From Oikopleura dioica (Eukaryota > Animalia > Chordata): a stretch of DNA of 64,000 nt. The stretch spans positions 10,168,001-10,232,000 of the forward strand of contig OU015568.1 in the NCBI GenBank assembly GCA_907165135.1. Direction: 5' to 3'. Within the stretch, counting starts at the first letter, position 1. Every line of letters starts with the position of its first letter. Both the position numbers and the translations under genes were made by a program. Below the pieces are notes generated by a model. It did not search any database. It saw only the letters and a list, made by a program, of their open reading frames with translations, and was not told the DNA's origin. This document shows positions 3,221 to 23,927 of the stretch, piece by piece.

Positions 3221-6200
3221 TTAGGTTAATAATAGAGGCCGAATATCCTTTTGGATTTGGGCAAAATTCTGTTCTAAGTTGAGGTGATATTCTGAGCGAG
3301 AATTGATCATTAGTTCTTTGTTTCTGGAAATGGCACAGCGGCAGACATGCATGAAGTCGATAAAAGCATCACGGAGGTCTTCCCAGTCGAGTATTTCTTG
3401 TTCGGTGACTGGTTTTTGACCGAGAAGCTCTCTCGCGAGGTGCAAAGGGCCCTTGAAATATTTTACTAACGTTTTTTTTCAAGATAAATCTTACCTGATT
3501 GACCGTCGCTTGAATAGATCCCTGTAATTGCAGTTGTATGATCCTCGTATCGTCAGATTTAAGCGAGTCATACAACGCCAAAGTCTTTGTGGTGATATCC
3601 TCTTTTGCAACTTGCAAGGGATTGAGCTCCTCTGTCCAGCTTCTCTTGACTTCTGCTTGTCCAAGAATGTAAGGCATCCGTGTTCTGACTTGTAGGAATG
3701 TTTTACGTTTGTATTGAACCTGAACTCAAATTAACGCGATCGCTTACAATGGTAAAGCGTCACCTTTACATCTCCATGAGCTTCCCCAGACGCAGTAAAC
3801 GGAGTTGCGTAGACGAAATTCGTTAAATTAACGAAATCTTGCCAGTTCTTGAATGGTTTCTGCCATTCTCTTCTATGAACCTTTAGAAAGGTTACCTGCA
3901 CCGAATTACTGTTTCCAGTTGGCGAAACGCTTTCCATAACGAGTTCTACATCCTCTCCAATAAGAGCGGAAGCTGATTTTCGAACACGATCTGAGACTTC
4001 CGATAATTTTGAAGCCATGGGCTCTCGAATGATGAAATCTTTATTCGCGAGAGTGACAGGAAAGGCCGGTCCTCGGTAATGCACTTTGAAATAGCAACCG
4101 AATCGTTCATCACCGTAGCGATCGTCTTGTTCGATTGCTTCTTGCTGTGCTGAGTAAATGTTTAGCTTGTCAAAAAGACAATGCATGAATACCTTGAAGA
4201 AGCTTTTCTGTGACATTTCTCATGGAATTTACATCCCCCGAAAGAAGATTCAACAGAGTCTGGTAACAACGAATGGATATCTCGGAAATCTTTCCCTTCG
4301 AGAAGCTTTTTGCAGCAGCCTCCAAGGACTGCTTGAATCCGTCTAGTGAAACTCTTGTATCTCTCTCTTGCGCAAACATAACTGCGGTAACGTGACCGAC
4401 CGACAAGCGGAGTTTAGCAGGCTCAGTCACGGCGGAATCGAGAGTTCTATTGATCCAGTCCGAAACAAATGCTTCGCTTTCTAAACTCCTCAAGCCAAGA
4501 TCTCGTGAAAAGAGAGCTGCTGATTTAGGAAGATTGTCACTATCCGGTGATGGAGCGTACCGGATGATTTCTAAAATGATTGCAGCTTTGTGAAGGTGGC
4601 AAAATCCTGCTTCAACTGGATGGGTTTCTTTTTGTTCCTCGGCTAGAGCAGTGAGCGCATCAATCCTTGATAGCGGGCAATAGGCGAGTAAATCTGCGAT
4701 TTGCATCAAAGTGAAATTTGAAGAGATGTTCTTCGAGTTCAAATCGATGAAATTGTCGACAGCTTCTACCAGACTCAAGATTCTTTCAGTAAACTCGACG
4801 TAGTGTTGACGAAACTCGGGTGAATCGTTTTGCGAGTATCCGAAAGACGACAGCTCTTTCAAATGGAAATACAAATTGCCACAATTGACGGTTCTCAGTT
4901 CAGAAAAGCTCTGATACCTTCTCAGCCCGAGAAGATTACAAACTCCGACGTTGATCCAGTAAGCAGGCAAGGAGAGGGTTGAAAATCGGACATAATGATC
5001 GGAAAGTACTTTCATCATCGTCAATTGAGCTGATTTTGAGACCTCCAAGTTGCCAGAGCTCAGTAAATTTGCGATTTTGATACACATGGCGGAAAGTAAC
5101 GGAGTGTAAATAAGACAGGGGAGGAACTTTGGCATCTGATTTCGCAAAACCTTCATAAGTCGAGTCAATGAACAGATAGCTGTCCCGTCACAAGTCAAGA
5201 TATGAATCATGACTTGGCAATAGGAACGGTGCCAGTAATCGCCATCGTCTTTTTCTTTCAGTTCGTAGATTTGTTCGAGAATGTCAATGACGGACTGGAA
5301 TATCTCGGTCGAGCTATCCAGATCAAGAATAATTCCTTGGTGCGTCTTATCGATGTCGAAAATGGACGATGCAGATGCTCTTCCAGAACCCGAAGTGGCT
5401 GTCAATCCACGAGTTTTTATTTGTTTCCACGATCTGAAACTACTTTCAGGAGCCTGATCAGGAGATCTTCCTAGCGACGCTGATTTCTGCTTCAGTAAAT
5501 TTACAGCTGATCCAGCGCCTTTATTCATCAGATCCAGTTGGTCGATGTTTTTCTTCGAATTCGATGGGTTTCGTTTCCTATCAAGAACGGCTTCAGGTGA
5601 ATATTTCAGGAGTGTCGTGATGGACAAAAGCATTTGGTTGAACAGAATGAGGTCTTTTTTGTCCATTGCGTTGATGAAATATGGAAATGTCGCTTTGCTG
5701 TTGCAGATCTTTCGAATCACCCACAAATTTACTACTAAGAGGATCTGCGCAGACGTGACAGGCATCTTATATTGATGCTTTTCTTTCGTATCGTCTGTGA
5801 ATAAATGTATCCTGTGAAGAGTTGATTTGACAAAAGGAAGGAAAAGGCGAGCTATTTCTTCGCTCATGTCATCGTAACGATTATCCGCGTCAATGGCCGA
5901 TTGAATCTTCATGAGCGAGCATAAATTGTAATTTAGTCCATGTACGTCCAAAGGACTCTTGGTACTCATAATCTTGATAACATCAGACATGATTTGCGAA
6001 AGAGGATCTTCCCCGAGATAATCTATTGAAGCTTTTTTCTCGTCGATCAGTTCAAAATACGATCCGTGGAAGACGATGAGACGGAAGAATCGAGCACGGA
6101 GAATGTTCATTGAATGCGTCTGCTGATCGTCTCCTACAGATCCTCTGGAGACGTCTTTAGTTATATCGTTGTATTGTTTGATCAGGTCAAAGAGTTGTTC

Positions 6201-9071
6201 CTTGCTGAGAATTTCGACTAAATCTCGGATAAAGAATCCGAACGAAGAGTTCATTCGGCGCGCATCTTCAAATCTATTGCCACTTCTTTTGGCGATTTCT
6301 TGAGTGATCCATGTCACGATGCTTTTCAGATAATCGAAAAAGCGTTCAGAAATTGTGTTCGATTTACCCTTCTCGCTGGAGAGCTGTAATTTATGCTCAG
6401 TAGCCGATTTAGTGATGAATTCCAAAAAGAACCAGACATTTTCAAGCACTTTTTCCTTCGAGGAATTCGAGCAAACGACCATTTGAAAAGCGAGTTCTTC
6501 GAACAACGGTCGTTTTATCTCATCTTTAGAAGGATTCATCGTCGATGGGGATGTTTTCATCGTCGATTTTTTCTTCGGGGTCAAATCAGGATTTGAAGCG
6601 GATGGATTCATCCTGGAAAGTCCTAAAGTTTCGGAATAGCTGGAATGGCGGTTGATTGATGCACCACTTGGCTTGGAACTGGTATTTTTCGATTTCATTG
6701 TGTGGCGAATCCAGTCTTTTCGCCCTAAAGTTGGGACATTTTGATCGTATGAGCTTTCGTCCATTATTCCTTCTCGCAGGACAAAGTAAACGTATTGCTC
6801 CAAATAGCGATTTCGCCCATGGGCGTCCCTCTTCAACGAATGATCTTCATGAATTCTTGAGACGAGAGAAACAAGAGTGTTGAAGGCTGCTTGAGCAATA
6901 ACAATTCGCTCCGTCAAAGGTGGATTTACGATGAGCCAGACTATTCGATTGAAAACTGTGTGCAAATGTTTAATGACCGAGCTCATAGCAGAATTTTGCG
7001 CTAGCGATCGAATTGAGCACAGAAGATCTTCATGAAGCTGCTCGACTGGCATTCTCCTCCCCGCAACGGTCGTAAATGTGTCTTCAGCTTCAAGCTTTTC
7101 TGCAGCCAAAACGCATTTGAGAAAGTAATGCACATTTCTGTCTTCAATATGGACGTTTGAATCGATCAAGACGTTTACTTTGAAAAGAGATTTCCTGTTT
7201 TCAAGCCATTTGACGCCGGGCAAATTTGCATCGGGGCTGATTCTTCCATAGCCACTTGGTGGTGGGTGAGAGCAGACGGGTAAATTAGCCTGTTGATTCA
7301 TCAGGTGTTGATTAGCATTCATCAGTGGGAGCCAACTGAAACCGACGGGGAGTTGTCGGCCTTCTTTGACGGAAATGTGGAAGAAGGTAAAGTAAAGATG
7401 GTGGTCAGGAGTTAGATTTGAAGGAACTTCGACCTTGATTTCGTCGAGAAAGGTCGGATGGCTGCGATGATAGGCGACGCTCGAGACATGGTGTGATTTC
7501 ATGATTCCGTCTTCGCCAAAAATCGCCGGCAAAGTTTCGAACTCGTTTCTGATTTCAATTTGCACGGCGATATTACGCGCTCGTTGATGATTTGAAAAGT
7601 TCACAGAGGTCGGGAAGATGTAGAGGACGTTTCGATAAGTGACAAGAGGTCTTGGCACTCGATTTTCTACTGGGAATTCGCGAACCATTTGTCCGATAGT
7701 TTGCGGGATGTCGTTTCGCCAGGGTTTGAGTTTTTGACCATCGTCGCTGCGGATATTGTGAAGGTCGACGGGGGACATGAGCGAGATGGAAAACTCGCAG
7801 TTGACGGTTCTTTGCTTATATTTTTGTGGGTTTTTGCAGACGTCGACGATGTGCCAGCAAATCTGCTCATCGGAGAGCTTTTCGTTGTCAGTCTTGTACA
7901 CCTGCTTGATGGAGAAATCGATAGCTCCATTAGGCGGGATGAACTCACTGCCAGCACCCGAGGATTCATCTTCAATGCTAAACGAGCTGTTGCTTGTTCG
8001 ATCCGAGTCGGAAAACACGGAATACGTTTCACTTTCATTGCTTCTCCTTCGATTCTCTGAAGAATGATGAGTGAACTTCCGCCGCTTCAGTCCTGCGAAA
8101 GCCACGAATGTCCACGCAAATTGCATTCGATATTGGCTCAGCAAGGACTCGTTGTTTTTCGCGGCGAGGCGAATCTTCTCCCTCTTTGCTTCTGGAACAT
8201 CCTTCTGATAAGCTTCTATTGGATCGTATTGGTCACTTTGGAAGCACTTTTCGATCTTCAACAGTATGACGTATTCGTCTTTGTTTTCTTCCAAATTGAA
8301 AACGGGAAATATCTTGTCCGCCGCTGTAAATTCGAAGTTGAAGTTTTCCGTCACTTTTCTCTTCTCCTTCATGTCGTAAATCGAGATCGATCCGAAGAGT
8401 CGTTCAAAGTTCTTGACCTCCCACTTCAGATGGTTGATTCTGAGGATGAAGGTCAGGGGCATTTTGAGGCATTTCTCCGGCACAGATGGAATCTCTCGCG
8501 ACTCATATTCTTCTGCTTCTGTTTTGAGCTTTGGCGGGGCAATAAGGGAGTATAAAAGCTAAAGAATGAATGAAGAATCATAGATTTTTGCGCTTTACCT
8601 TCGGTCTATCCCAAGAAATCTTCATTCTAGGGCTCATTTCCTTCACCGACTGCAGAGTTACTGACTTTGTCGGAGGCCTAGGAAAGCTTTCTTCTGTTCT
8701 CAAAGTCGTTTTCATTTTCTTACAGTTTTCTACGAGATCTTGCTTAAAGTACATTCGTTCCACGGAATTCTAAAGTTGTCGGTCATTCACTTTTCAACTC
8801 TCTATTTTAGCATTTTAGCTTGTCGGTTTTGCGACAGTTCGTCTTTGTTAGCTACTTACAAATGCATCCGTCGGTTTTATGGTCATCCATTCAGCTGAAT
8901 AGGTTTTTATGGCTTGGTGAGCGACTTCGTCGACTTTTCGTGGCTGAAATTGATGAACAAACGGGCTATTTTAGGCTTTTCCAAATCTGTAAGATCTCTA
9001 GAATGTTTTTGTTGGTTTCGAAAGCTTTCCTGTAGCGTTCTATGCTGATTCTCTCGAACGGCATCGCTCAT
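3221..9071 (-). CDS. DOCK7: DOCK-C (DOCK6/7/8) family Rac/Cdc42 GEF; exact 5' exon uncertain
   Basis: DHR-1/C2: YRNVLYIFPTSVNF..RARNIAVQI..FLDEIKVEVP..HHLYFTFFHIS..PVGFSWLPL. DHR-2: RFGCYFKVHY..FIIREP, YATPFT..GEAHG, LQLQLQGSIQATVNQGP. GT-AG introns join the ORF segments. DOCK6 vs 7 vs 8 orthology not resolvable. Confidence 0.92.
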
Positions 9072-19527: not shown

Positions 19528-21151
19528 ATGACTCTGATCCAAAGAAGTAAGTTTCTTGCCACTTTTATCTGACCGAGAAAGTACCTTGTTTTTCAACCGC
19601 AGAAAATTTCACGCCATTTCCAAGTGAAAAATTTGCCAATCGTGAAATAGTGCTTTTATGAAAGAAAATACGATGCTTATCTGGCGAGAATGTAAGAGAT
19701 CGTTTTTCATGATTTCACTTTGATCTTTGAAGTATTTTTGATGGAATTTAGATTCACTTGATTAGTAAAGAATTAAATTTTTAAAATTATTGAAAAACTT
19801 GATTTTATAATTTTTTGAGATTATTCTTATTTACGCAATTTTCTAGTACCTTTTCGCGGAATTCTTGAAATGTGACTTTGTCATGCGTATTTGATGACTA
19901 GATTTTTGACGATTAGGCGAGGAAAGAGCTCAAGTCTCCAAATTTCCCAATTTCCAGATTTTTTTACAATGAATTATTTACGCAAACGCAAAAGAGAAAA
20001 TATGACTATGTCAAGTCGTAAGATCAGGTCCGGTAGTAAGTTTTTTCAGAACTGATTTTGCATTTCAAGGTTCGATGATTATTACGAAAAAGGAAAGCTG
20101 ATCGGCTCTGGAGGGTTCGGGTCAGTTCACTCCGGCAAATCCAAGCGCACCAGAGAGAATATTGCGATCAAGTACATTTTGAAGCAGCGCGTGCCCAAGT
20201 GGACCGAAATTGTTGTTGGGGATCAGCCGAAACGAGTCACGTTAGAGATTCAGCTTCTCCGGCGAATTGGCAAGCATGAGAATATCATCGCTCTTCGCGA
20301 GTGGTTTGAAAACTCAGTCGAGTTTATCTTGATCTTCGACCGCCCTGCTGCTCACAAAGATCTGTTTGGTAAAAAAAATCAAAAAGAGTTCAACAAAATT
20401 TGATGATGGTTTTAGATTTCATATCAGATGCTGGGAAGTTATCAGAAAGCGTTTCTCGAAATTTCTTCCGTCAGATTGTCAGTGCCATCGATTTCTGTCA
20501 CAGGTGAATGCAAATCATACTTGCAGAAGTTAAACTGTTATTCAAAAGACGCGGCGTAGCACATCGCGACCTAAAGGACGAAAATTTCGTTGTGGATATG
20601 GACACAAAGCGACTCTTCCTGATCGATTTTGGCTCCGGCGCGCTGCTCCACAACGGCCTCGATACTGTTTACACGGATTTCGATGGGACACGGTAAGAAA
20701 ATCCGTTGAGGGCCTTACTAATTGGGGCGTTTAAGGGTTTACTCTCCGCCTGAATGGATAATGACGAAAAGATATACTGCCAATGGCCTTGCTGTTTGGT
20801 CATTAGGCATTTTGCTTTACGATATGCTTTCAGGCGACATACCCTGGGATAATGATCAGGTAAAAAAGTCAACTTTAATTTCAATAATTAGGGATTTTTA
20901 AGGACATTTGCACAGGCAAGCTTCTCCCAGAAGATCAAATAAAATCGAATAATCCGACAAACCAAGTGCCGCTCTTCACAAAATGGAGCGCAGAACTCAA
21001 GGACCTGCTCATAAGAATGCTTCAGCACGATCAAAAACGCCGCATAAAGATGGAGCAGGTCCTTACTCACTCTTTTGTCAAAACGTCTACCCTTTCTTAC
21101 TCGAGCCCGGCTAGAGTAACTCGCAGTATGACGAGCAAAACTCGTCGGTGA
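19528..21151 (+). CDS. Pim-family serine/threonine kinase
   Basis: [14 protein letters not shown], Pim hinge [61 protein letters not shown]. All introns GT-AG and frame-consistent from ATG 19528. Confidence 0.93.
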
Positions 21152-21564
21152 TGTACTCTCAATTATGGCTTTTACATCTTGAATAGTATCAATGTGAAAT
21201 GTTAACTAGTCTTGAAAAATTACACTTTTATTGCTGCTCAAAACATTTTCTCTTACGGTTAATTATCTAGAGCCTCATTCTATGTATGAAATACCCTTAA
21301 ATGCCCACAAAGAAAATTAAACGATAATTCGTTGCCTCAAAATCTGCTCCATGCTGGTCCCACTTATCTGGTTCCAATTTCCTAACTGTTCTCTACTTGC
21401 ATTTTACTGTGCTTATACTTTTAATTTGCTCAATCCAAAATGATGAATCAATAAATTTTTTTCTGACGAATTGAAGTTTGCGTTGATTTATTTGTAATTG
21501 TATTGGGTTCACAATTATCAAATTTCCTCTTGTGGGTTCTTTTTGGCCCGCAAGAGTGGCCACT

Positions 21565-23927
21565 TTAGCAAGGTGTGACTGTGTAAGTTCCTTGATAAGT
21601 ATCTGCCTTGTTTCCTTTTGTTGTTGGAAGCCCAATCGCAGCCTTAATGAAAACGGGGGAAAAAACAAGGAGGAAAATAGTGTTACCTTGAACGCAGAGT
21701 GGCTGAGAGCTATGTGCCCAGGTCCATCATAAACGTCGACAATTTGAACCTTGGCAATCGGACCACCTTTGCAGCCGCTAAAAGGTGGACACCAGACAAA
21801 TACGCATCTGAAAAGAAAAAATACAAATTTGTATTTTTGATAAACTTACTTTCCACAATCGTCTCGAGATCCGACCCTGGAGTTGATCGCGGCGTAAATA
21901 GCAGATTTAGGGTTGATTCCGCAGACTCCGCTCTAAAGAATGAAACTGTTTAGTATTTTCTCTTGGTAGAATATTTACTGTTGGATTTGCCGGAGCGCCG
22001 ATTCCAGTAAGTGATTGAAGTGAACCTCCAAAAGATGTTTTCTTCGTAGTTGGTGGCTGGGTAGTCGTTGTTGTTCGCGGGGTGGTTTTTTCTTCAATCA
22101 AAAAGGGACTGAGGAAATCCGCAATGAAATTATCAAACTGAGCTCCAGTTGCGCCGAGGTTTCTATCCTTGACAGGCGATTCCATGATTGGGGCCGCCAT
22201 TTGTTGCTCGAAAATGGAACTGCTAGGAGAATCATGCTGCTTTTTCTTTTGCGCTTCTAAATCACGGCATCTCTTGATGTTTTTTCCAGGTGGGCAATCC
22301 ACCTTTCCACCAGCTAAAAAATAGTTTTTTTTAGCTGACAATTAGAAGAATAAAATAATGACGGCTTGAATGAACTTATTCAGACTCATAGGAGTAACTG
22401 GCAATTGTAAATTGCTGACAAGAATTATATGAGATATAATTACTTTTTCCTCCTTTGCCTCCTTTTGCACCTTTCCCGCCCTTCTTCCTAGGACGGGTTG
22501 TTGCAGCGGGCCGAGTTGGCCGGACATAAGGTGTCGTTCTTCGCGTCGTTCTTCTCGTGGTTGTTCGGCGTGTTGTTGTCGCTGAAGTCGGTTTGGGTTT
22601 GCTTCCGAAAAATCCGCCACCAGATGAACCGGATCCAAAGACACTCATGAAGCTTCCGCCACCTTTTTTAAGATCATTTACCGCTGAATACTGCAATGAA
22701 AAAATCCCTATCCATAAATTAAATGAACGTTTCCTGATGACGACCCAAACATGCCACCCGAGGACACTTTCTTGGGTGGAGTCGCTGGGGGAGCGCTTTT
22801 CGAAGGCTTAGAACCTCCGAACAAAGATCCCATTTGGCTGAAGATGCCTTTCGATTGCGTCACAATCTTCTTCGCTTGTTCCCCAGCAGGTGCAGGCTTG
22901 CCATCCAAATAGGCAAACTTGCCAATTTCCCAGTCTAGCAGCTTTGTTCTGACTCTAGCTCCACTATCATATTGAAGATATATTTCTAATGGAGCAGAGA
23001 GTGTGGTTTTTGGGCTCATCTTCCCACGCCAGTAGAAGTAATCAGCGCCTGACTTGAAAGGGTCTTGAGAGACGATGAATTTGGTCTTCGTATTTGCAGG
23101 ACGGATTCGCATCCATGTAATTTTTTCCGGAACATCGATTGGCTGGACTTCCCAAGATCCAGATTTGTTATTATCTGTTGCTGAGTTCTAGCGTGCGACT
23201 CGTGTTTTCCCCGTGTTTGAGTAAACAGAGAAATCTCCATTTCCTTCATTCGATGTTATTTTGACTGACTCGCGAACTTTTCCTGTGACGTAAAGCTTTG
23301 GTCGGCGTTCTTGTGGACATTTTACGAAATTCCATGCGATGTTCATAGAACTTACTCTGTTCGCTTTTGATCCCATGAGACCGTTCCAAGCCTTTTGGTT
23401 GACTTCGATTTCTTCGTCTTCATAAGTCGTAGTGGCTTGGGCGACGACTTTAGCGATGATCTTTCTTGGTCTACCAGAGCTGTCTCGCTCACAGAATTGA
23501 CCAACGCACGAAATTTGCGCGCACTTTTAGGGGATCAAAACACAAAATAATTCGAAAATTGCATAATGAAATTGAAAAATGTAGCATTCGAAATCATGGT
23601 TCTAAAACCCGACCCCGTCCACAGCTACTAAAGCTTCTCAATGTTCGACCATTGACGGCCATAATATAATCATCATTAACTTCAACAAGTTGGCAGCCAA
23701 TGCCTCCTCGTTTATTTATATCTTCGAGGTTTGGATTCGGTTTGACTTTTCCCGAAGTAGCAACTAAAATATCACATGTTTTTCTCTAGTTCTCACTTTC
23801 GATCTTCAGTTGTACGTCGATTTTTTCTCTTACCTTCTCCATTTCTTTGTGTAATTTTTCTTAGAATTTTGTCACCTCTAGCCGCAGAGGCACCAGTTGC
23901 GAGCGAGAACACCGCAACGAGCTTCAT
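21565..23927 (-). CDS. Secreted Thr/Gly-rich protein with a C-terminal expansin/loosenin-like double-psi beta-barrel (RlpA-like DPBB) domain
   Basis: Signal peptide MKLVAVFSLATGASA and mucin-like TTTRRTTTRR / TTPRTTTTTQPPTT tracts. Last three exons (21932-21850, 21807-21687, 21642-21565; GT-AG introns of 46, 42 and 44 nt) encode SGVCGINPKSAIYAAINS..DDCGKCVFVWC..KVQIVDVYDGPGHIALSHSAFKAAIG..TYTVTPC*. Confidence 0.75.

Follow-up and report, generated by a model that had tools for sequence, protein, structure and literature searches.

Positions 23927 to 21565 on the minus strand of a 64,000-nucleotide stretch of contig OU015568.1 (positions 10,168,001 to 10,232,000; from here on referred to as the window) hold a gene of nine exons encoding a protein of 586 amino acids, as assembled from frame maps and relatives. 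Structure prediction gives this protein a tripartite architecture: an expansin module of domain 1 (D1, a double-psi β-barrel or DPBB) and domain 2 (D2, a β-sandwich), a low-complexity linker rich in Gly, Thr, Ser, Lys and Pro, and a second D1-like domain at the C-terminus. An earlier interpretation of the window, made from the letters alone and referred to as the sequence-only reading, had seen in the last three exons an expansin-like DPBB carried by a secreted mucin-like protein. The expansin-like domain stood up, whereas the complete expansin module at the N-terminus had no part in that interpretation; secretion, also claimed, and a Thr/Pro-rich linker are borne out at the level of sequence. 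No second copy of the gene was found within the 64-kb window.

The three terminal exons (A, B and C in the sequence-only reading, here exons 7 to 9) proved exact in coordinates and reading. Joined across their small canonical introns, they encode a 93-residue peptide, from SGVCGINP to TYTVTPC, that forms the C-terminus of the 586-residue protein, with exon 7 ending after two nucleotides of a Lys codon. An intron-less, transcript-like contig of 1897 nt from JGI sample 3300032733 (L001) carries an open reading frame (ORF, 66-1832) for an ortholog of 588 amino acids (P0014). It maps in exon blocks to the Oikopleura dioica reference scaffold FN653045.1 at 98.6-100% identity, and the block borders include matching GG-AG and GA-AG introns. 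The window model is 83% identical to P0014 over its full length, and the A/B/C junctions are colinear and gap-free between the two and agree with the GenBank models CBY24361.1, CBY35441.1 and CBY33341.1. The splice junctions are therefore supported by a transcript contig in the reference lineage together with the colinearity of the window model with its product, and the exons are real coding sequence; agreement of this extent goes well past chance. The gene is under strong purifying selection: over the 93 C-terminal codons, window and L001 differ at a proportion of 0.69 of synonymous (pS) and 0.11 of non-synonymous sites (pN), a ratio of non-synonymous to synonymous divergence (dN/dS) of 0.06. 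Against the reference type, the whole gene has a dN/dS of 0.07, falling to 0.06 for the C-terminal domain and 0.02 for the N-terminal D1, with synonymous sites near saturation (pS 0.66).

The three GenBank models (UniProt E4XFL5, E4YIY0 and E4YCS4) are O. dioica proteins that fall into the same 90% cluster as P0014; they are listed as "unnamed" or "uncharacterized", measure 237-241 amino acids and cover the C-terminal half only. The gene is flanked at the reference locus by genes for a Na+/H+ exchanger and a protein kinase, and the three-gene order matches that of the window. Because of these cluster members and shared neighbours, the window belongs to O. dioica or a close sibling lineage, and the organism is indeed a builder of cellulose houses, as had been supposed. 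In the reference gene set only the C-terminal half has been called (CBY24361.1, 237 amino acids) and the N-terminal expansin exons are uncalled; positions 8598-10000 of L002, a piece of FN653045.1, are the counterpart of window positions 23927-22700 and hold no called gene, and the stretch contains 967 N. The full locus spans 8598-11016 of L002, or about 188,886-191,304 of FN653045.1.

Three of the eight introns are non-canonical (one GG-AG, two GA-AG), with positions and types that are identical in the O. dioica reference and supported by L001. If the GA-AG intron at 23282-23175 is not removed, translation runs into an in-frame TAG (23190-23188), and bogus public ORF calls (P0002, P0004) result. 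An alternative model that skipped an in-frame TAG and used a 38-nt GT-AG intron was ruled out by P0003, P0014 and the mapping of L001 on the reference; GA-AG introns of 108 and 71 nt take its place.

Table 1 Features of the expansin-like gene, its product and its surroundings, in window coordinates and residues of the 586-residue protein.
Feature	Window position (strand)	Residues	Remarks
Exon 1	23834..23927 (-)		ATG at 23927; signal-peptide-like N-terminus MKLVAVFSLATGASAA, judged by eye
Intron 1	(-)		70 nt, GT-AG
Exon 2	23615..23763 (-)		First part of N-terminal D1 (GGIGCQ to SCGR)
Intron 2	23614-23524 (-)		91 nt, GG-AG
Exon 3	23283..23523 (-)		Second part of N-terminal D1 (CAQISC, VVAQ, EIEVN, FVKCP) and start of D2; EIEVN is the site of the invariant Glu
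Intron 3	23282-23175 (-)		108 nt, GA-AG; position identical in reference genome, transcript-supported
Exon 4	22734..23174 (-)		Bulk of expansin-like domain 2 (β-sandwich) and start of linker
Intron 4	22733-22663 (-)		71 nt, GA-AG; placed by analogy with transcript mapped on reference genome
Exon 5	22444..22662 (-)		Linker: Gly/Ser-rich and basic Thr-rich (TTTRRTTTRR...)
Intron 5	(-)		130 nt, between exons 5 and 6
Exon 6	21979..22313 (-)		Linker: Cys pair DCPPGKNIKRC, FD.FI.DFLSPF motif, Thr-rich run
Intron 6	21933..21978 (-)		46 nt, GT-AG; between linker exon and exon A
Exon 7 (A)	21850..21932 (-)		83 nt; start of C-terminal DPBB, SGVCGINP to DCGK
Intron 7	21808..21849 (-)		42 nt, GT-AG; within CGKC motif
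Exon 8 (B)	21687..21807 (-)		121 nt; DPBB core: CVFVWC, SGC, QIVD, HIALS
Asp of QIVD	21737-21735 (-)		In exon 8
HIALS	21716-21702 (-)		In exon 8
Intron 8	21643..21686 (-)		44 nt, GT-AG
Exon 9 (C)	21565..21642 (-)		78 nt including TAA (21567-21565); end of DPBB, terminal Cys
Polyadenylation-like signal	21487..21492 (-)		AATAAA, ~73 nt past the stop codon
Signal-peptide-like start		1-16	Judged by eye
D1		51-151	
D2	23313-22894 (-)	152-255	
Linker		256-493	G 14%, T 12%, S 11%, K 11%, P 10%
Second D1-like domain		494-586	Without D2
Acidic-pair stretch, N-terminal D1	23448-23398	107-123	
Acidic-pair stretch, C-terminal domain	21743-21702	541-556	
Serine/threonine kinase gene	~20179-21151 (+)		Multi-exon; convergent with the expansin-like gene, facing its 3' end
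Na+/H+ exchanger gene	beyond 23927		Head-to-head upstream, as identified in the sequence-only reading; also at the reference locus

Judged by its predicted structure, the N-terminal module (residues 51-255) is a complete but very divergent expansin. The model of residues 32-300 of P0014 (predicted local distance difference test score, pLDDT, 76) shows both expansin domains. Foldseek matched it to plant, fungal and bacterial expansins with E-values of 7e-13 to 1.7e-10 and template-modelling (TM) scores of 0.64-0.79; the 12 best-ranked chains represent ten two-domain expansin structures, and the D2 part also matches Phl p 2 and Phl p 3, two allergens that consist of a D2 alone. In VIA-align superpositions the ten expansins reach Z 16.6-18.4 over 184-206 residues, compared with Z 11.6 for the best single-domain protein. 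D1 runs directly into D2 behind a signal peptide recognized by eye, the same order as in the plant expansins Phl p 1 (1N10), EXPB1 (2HCZ) and GhEXLA1 (7XC8). Searches of the Protein Data Bank (PDB) using exon 3 (phmmer) or a profile of the N-terminal half (A2) returned nothing relevant. Because the protein opens with a complete D1-D2 module, the C-terminal domain is to be seen as a second, D2-less head rather than as the sole expansin-like part; no D2 follows it and the protein ends there.

For the C-terminal domain, an AlphaFold2 model of residues 490-588 of P0014, built with four homologs, reached a pLDDT of 82.7 and a predicted TM score of 0.75 and adopts the six-stranded double-psi β-barrel fold. 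Expansins make up nine of its 11 best Foldseek matches, with weak E-values of 6e-3 and above. VIA-align gave Z 8.1-8.7 for eight expansins, the best superpositions being those with bacterial expansins (Bacillus subtilis EXLX1, 3D30/2BH0; Clavibacter, 4JCW; Xanthomonas; Streptomyces EXLX1) at Z 8.1-8.7 and a root-mean-square deviation (rmsd) of 2.2-2.4 Å; Clavibacter expansin D1 superposes at Z 8.7 and 2.2 Å over 86 of the 99 residues. Other families follow with kiwellin at 8.0, cerato-platanin at 7.5, loosenin at 7.0, barwin-like proteins at 6.9-7.0, GH45 at 6.2-6.6 and generic DPBBs at ~5.3. When 48,161 representative PDB chains were scanned without the Foldseek prefilter, only four, all of them expansins, reached Z>=8; ranks 5-14 were taken by other barwin-like DPBB proteins, and the top 50 rows are essentially all DPBB.

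Sequence comparison points the same way. A profile of the C-terminal domain had a single match in the PDB, the β-expansin Phl p 1, at an E-value of 2.6 that is not significant alone; the alignment is gap-free over CGxCxxxxCxxxxxCxGxP and then places IVD on ITD and ALS..AF on DLS..AF. In hhalign the C-terminal domain matches the N-terminal D1 of the same protein with an E-value of 1.2e-4 over 87 columns, and a joint alignment of the two shows six invariant cysteines. The combined two-domain profile (A3) ranks Phl p 1 (E 0.011), cotton GhEXLA1 (0.036) and maize EXPB1 (0.05) highest in the PDB. Over profile positions 6-103, from first to last cysteine, all six cysteines of both larvacean DPBB domains align with C42, C70, C73, C78, C84 and C140 of EXPB1, reportedly the residues of its three D1 disulfides. 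As predicted structure, C-terminal profile and homology to the N-terminal D1 agree, we regard the assignment of the C-terminal domain as an expansin-type DPBB as confirmed at the level of modelling and sequence comparison. The expansin-D1-like fold proposed earlier is likewise upheld, on the ortholog's model, by Foldseek, VIA-align, the 48,161-chain scan and the A3 profile alike.

The Asp of the HFD motif that is conserved in expansins is present in neither DPBB domain. HMMER alignments place Ala at this position in every C-terminal domain (HIALS, DVALS, DFALS, DLALS, DIAMS); the His is kept in the window and in P0014 (HIALS), and the other members read D-x-A-L/M-S. In the N-terminal D1 the position is held by an invariant Glu (EIEVN, DVELN), a conservative change. 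At the "TD" motif, most C-terminal domains keep the Asp (IVD) and the N-terminal D1 reads Ala followed by Gln (VVAQ). The sequence-only reading had found the Asp of IVD retained and the HFD position taken by Ala, a mapping recovered in the HMMER alignment to Phl p 1, which sets IVD on ITD and HIALS on HFDLS. The acidic pair of expansins is thus split into complementary halves, the N-terminal D1 carrying Glu at the HFD site and the C-terminal domain, in most members, the Asp of IVD. As for the catalytic Asp pair of GH45 enzymes, the position equivalent to the acid is occupied by Ala in the C-terminal domain and by Glu in the N-terminal D1. Published mutagenesis of B. subtilis EXLX1 reportedly identified D82, the equivalent of the HFD Asp, as needed for loosening, and we take the HFD-Asp position of the C-terminal domain to correspond to D82. 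Because this residue is Ala, the C-terminal domain reads as a head with a putative role in binding or structure, whereas any activity may reside in the N-terminal module.

The exon-3 piece, which covers the second part of D1 and the start of D2, was the one piece used for an exhaustive HMMER search. Among 1.84 billion representatives phmmer found six real relatives of it, none outside the larvacean-like family, and otherwise low-complexity noise; a follow-up search gave P0014. Four further full-length relatives (P0003, P0007, P0008, P0009), transcript-like contigs of public runs, share the layout and are 35-62% identical in exon 3. The linker is not wholly low-complexity: the Cys pair of exon 6 (residues ~382-470) is common to P0003 and P0014, and the FD.FI.DFLSPF motif, which has no Pfam match, is kept in all four full-length relatives. 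A homolog also lies on marine metagenome contigs of 28-42 kb, including L008, that represent a compact, intron-bearing, larvacean-like genome with different neighbours (PTR2 and Peptidase_M19 on L008, as opposed to those of the O. dioica locus). On L008 the N-terminal D1 (5261-5713) and the C-terminal DPBB (7043-7462) are encoded by one exon each, so that the tiny introns splitting the O. dioica DPBB domains are probably later, lineage-specific gains. For the same reason the near-coincident introns at the CGxC motifs were dropped as a sign of internal duplication.

Compared with known systems, the protein is closest in framework to plant expansins. Both larvacean DPBB domains share with these the cysteine spacing C-x(22-28)-C-x2-C-x4-C-x(4-5)-C-x(52-57)-C, and the ITD/IVD and (HF)D-L-S..AF motifs are recognizable. 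However, identity is just 14-21% and below Pfam thresholds, the HFD Asp has changed to Glu in one D1 and to Ala in the other, the larvacean protein is more than twice as long owing to a linker of ~240 residues and a second D1 without D2, and the gene is an animal gene with tiny and non-canonical introns of the Oikopleura type. Bacterial expansins, which also match the N-terminal two-domain model (Z 17.2-18.1), are non-hydrolytic cellulose binders and serve as a functional model for the larvacean protein, yet they are absent from the PDB profile matches, where the six-Cys framework was matched to plant expansins instead. Fungal loosenins (PcaLOOL12, 9CE9), cerato-platanins, barwin and kiwellin resemble the C-terminal domain in being DPBBs without D2 (Z 6.5-8.0). 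Neither loosenins nor cerato-platanins hydrolyse the polysaccharides on which they act or to which they bind. In contrast to all these small stand-alone proteins, the C-terminal domain is the tail of a 586-residue protein with a full expansin module; the fold similarity of loosenins and cerato-platanins (Z 6.5-7.5) lies below that of expansins, and there was no sequence-level match to single-domain DPBB proteins. The gh9-expansin of O. dioica is the same general kind of protein in the same animal, encoded by a different gene; it is recognized by standard annotation, whereas the family described here has no Pfam domain and lacks GH9 and Sushi parts, and phmmer with the D1 of this family (exon-3 piece) did not retrieve it. 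Nematode expansin-like proteins such as Globodera Gr-EXPB1, compared by description only, are likewise animal-encoded, secreted and expansin-related, but have a reversed domain order and target the host wall (10.1101/637728), in contrast to the canonical D1-D2 order plus extra D1 of the larvacean protein, the substrate of which is likely the animal's own cellulose.

From its secretion signal, full expansin head, long spacer and second head of glycan-binding type, we infer that the protein is a bivalent, non-hydrolytic polysaccharide binder. The N-terminal expansin head would bind, and possibly loosen, cellulose microfibrils, and the C-terminal DPBB, lacking the loosening residue, would anchor the protein to glycans a second time, across an extended and probably O-glycosylated spacer. 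In this way the protein may hold fibrils together or keep them apart, or attach its expansin head to the matrix; the cellulose-scaffolded rudiment of the house is the most likely site. We assign a probability of about 60% to this combination of a nine-exon gene for an expansin D1-D2, linker and D1-like protein with a two-headed, non-hydrolytic role in tethering cellulose or matrix. Circumstantial support for a role in the house comes by analogy from gh9-expansin (GSOIDG00010457001), which has been reported in the house-producing posterior Fol cells and proposed to relax cellulose fibres (10.64898/2026.03.31.715263), an expression pattern suggesting that cellulose-acting proteins are used for the house.

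It should be noted that several observations weigh against this interpretation. All structures were predicted for the ortholog P0014 (82-83% identical) and not for the window's own sequence, the alignment of the C-terminal domain holds five sequences, and the five AlphaFold models of this domain range in pLDDT from 82.7 down to 36.5, two of them below 50. The fold alone is not diagnostic of expansins, because the expansin Z-scores lie less than 1.5 above those of kiwellin, cerato-platanin and a Streptomyces papain inhibitor (7.3-8.0), and the E-values of the A3 profile in the PDB (0.011-0.05) are borderline. Pfam gave no match for the single exons and exon pieces of the window or for P0014 and its domain pieces, and no usable match for P0003, P0005, P0007, P0008, P0009, P0014 or P0016. 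No family member exceeds the gathering threshold of DPBB_1 (PF03330) or Expansin_C (PF01357), the best trace being DPBB_1 in the N-terminal domain of P0007 with 17.3 bits against a cut-off of 28.8. The Asp of IVD is not universal, being replaced by Gly in P0008, Ser in the L008 homolog and Asn in P0069. None of 41 oikosin in-situ primer pairs (Oik9-51a; Hosp et al. 2012, PMC3390340) matches L001, L002 or the window with <=4 mismatches, in a primer table that leaves out oikosins 1-8, 18, 32 and extra paralogs and goes back to a 2012 gene set holding only half of the gene. Finally, no expression, localization or binding data for the gene were found.

A different site of action has been considered, in which the protein is secreted into the gut and opens the cellulosic walls of ingested algae instead of shaping the animal's own cellulose. 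O. dioica is a filter feeder, expansin genes occur in algae-eating bivalves (Chase et al., 10.1101/637728), such a role has been proposed for the cellulases and expansin-like genes that various invertebrates, bivalves among them, possess, and the lack of a matching oikosin probe primer fits this idea as well. A long mucin-like spacer and an Asp-less second DPBB are, however, more like a matrix or tethering protein, the family was found only in larvacean-like sequences, and the reported location of gh9-expansin in house-producing Fol cells of the same animal also speaks against the gut, a role we therefore consider unlikely.

We consider it similarly improbable that the C-terminal DPBB works in the manner of single-domain barwin-like proteins, binding chitin or other glycans or inhibiting enzymes in defence or matrix and not acting on cellulose. 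The small distance in fold similarity, the missing D2, the absence of the Asp reportedly needed for loosening and the report of chitin synthases in some oikoplastic cells (10.64898/2026.03.31.715263) would suit such a role. At the sequence level, however, the PDB matches are expansins only, the six cysteines align with those of EXPB1 D1, and homology links the domain to the N-terminal D1, itself part of a complete expansin module.

With regard to origin, word-seeded profile searches with A2 and A1 retrieved only fragments of the same family, and no relative turned up when 185,579 genomes of bacteria and archaea were scanned by pattern. The family is found only in larvacean-like transcripts and metagenome contigs, none of them bacterial. 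A recent horizontal transfer from bacteria, whether of the entire gene or of the C-terminal domain only, is very unlikely. Bacterial expansins are among the best structural matches, and a bacterial source is accepted for the cellulose synthase of tunicates (literature quoted in 10.1101/637728), which counts in favour of such a transfer. Against it, the phmmer search (exon-3 piece) and the profile and pattern searches gave family members or nothing, and of the eight spliceosomal introns in the gene three belong to the G*-AG type characteristic of Oikopleura; since the six-Cys framework is of plant type and the only significant sequence matches are plant expansins, we see no support for it. It is scarcely credible that a shallow alignment has produced a false DPBB assignment for what is a lineage-specific cysteine-rich module: the five-sequence alignment, the two models with a pLDDT below 50, the missing Pfam match and Foldseek E-values of only 6e-3 and above would allow it, but the prefilter-free structure scan, the HMMER matches to plant expansins and the homology to the N-terminal D1, whose two-domain model reaches Z 18, are partly independent of one another and agree on an expansin-type DPBB.

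Chase et al. listed an annotated expansin gene in O. dioica and were unsure whether it is cellular (10.1101/637728); the O. dioica accession is not listed in the portion of their supplements available. With further O. dioica expansin genes in print (10.1101/637728; 10.64898/2026.03.31.715263), animal expansins are less rare than the sequence-only reading, which had them mainly in nematodes, assumed, and novelty is limited because both preprints already report such genes. It lies in the divergence of this expansin family and in its D1-D2-linker-D1-like architecture, not in a new kind of protein. In the searchable literature we found no description of a full expansin joined to a second D1-like head by a mucin-like spacer, no mention of the GenBank or UniProt accessions of this gene and no paper linking Oikopleura with DPBB proteins.

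Tunicates stand alone among animals, to our knowledge, in using cellulose as a building material. How larvaceans shape their cellulose-scaffolded house and inflate it within minutes is poorly understood. The gene described here is a candidate for house building that standard annotation has overlooked, having no Pfam domain and being represented in the reference set by an unnamed C-terminal half only. Its Glu-bearing and Ala-bearing DPBB domains can be compared for the binding and loosening of tunicate cellulose. More tentatively, and with doubt outweighing confidence, we suggest that larvaceans possess their own divergent family of two-headed expansins that sets the spacing or sliding of cellulose microfibrils as the house rudiment swells, with a plant-type disulfide framework and possibly a eukaryotic (algal or plant-like) origin. 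In such a design, Glu would keep an acidic loosening site in the complete expansin head, and the other head would be a loosening-dead DPBB at the end of a long glycosylated spacer. If true, the mechanics of plant walls would have a counterpart in an animal.

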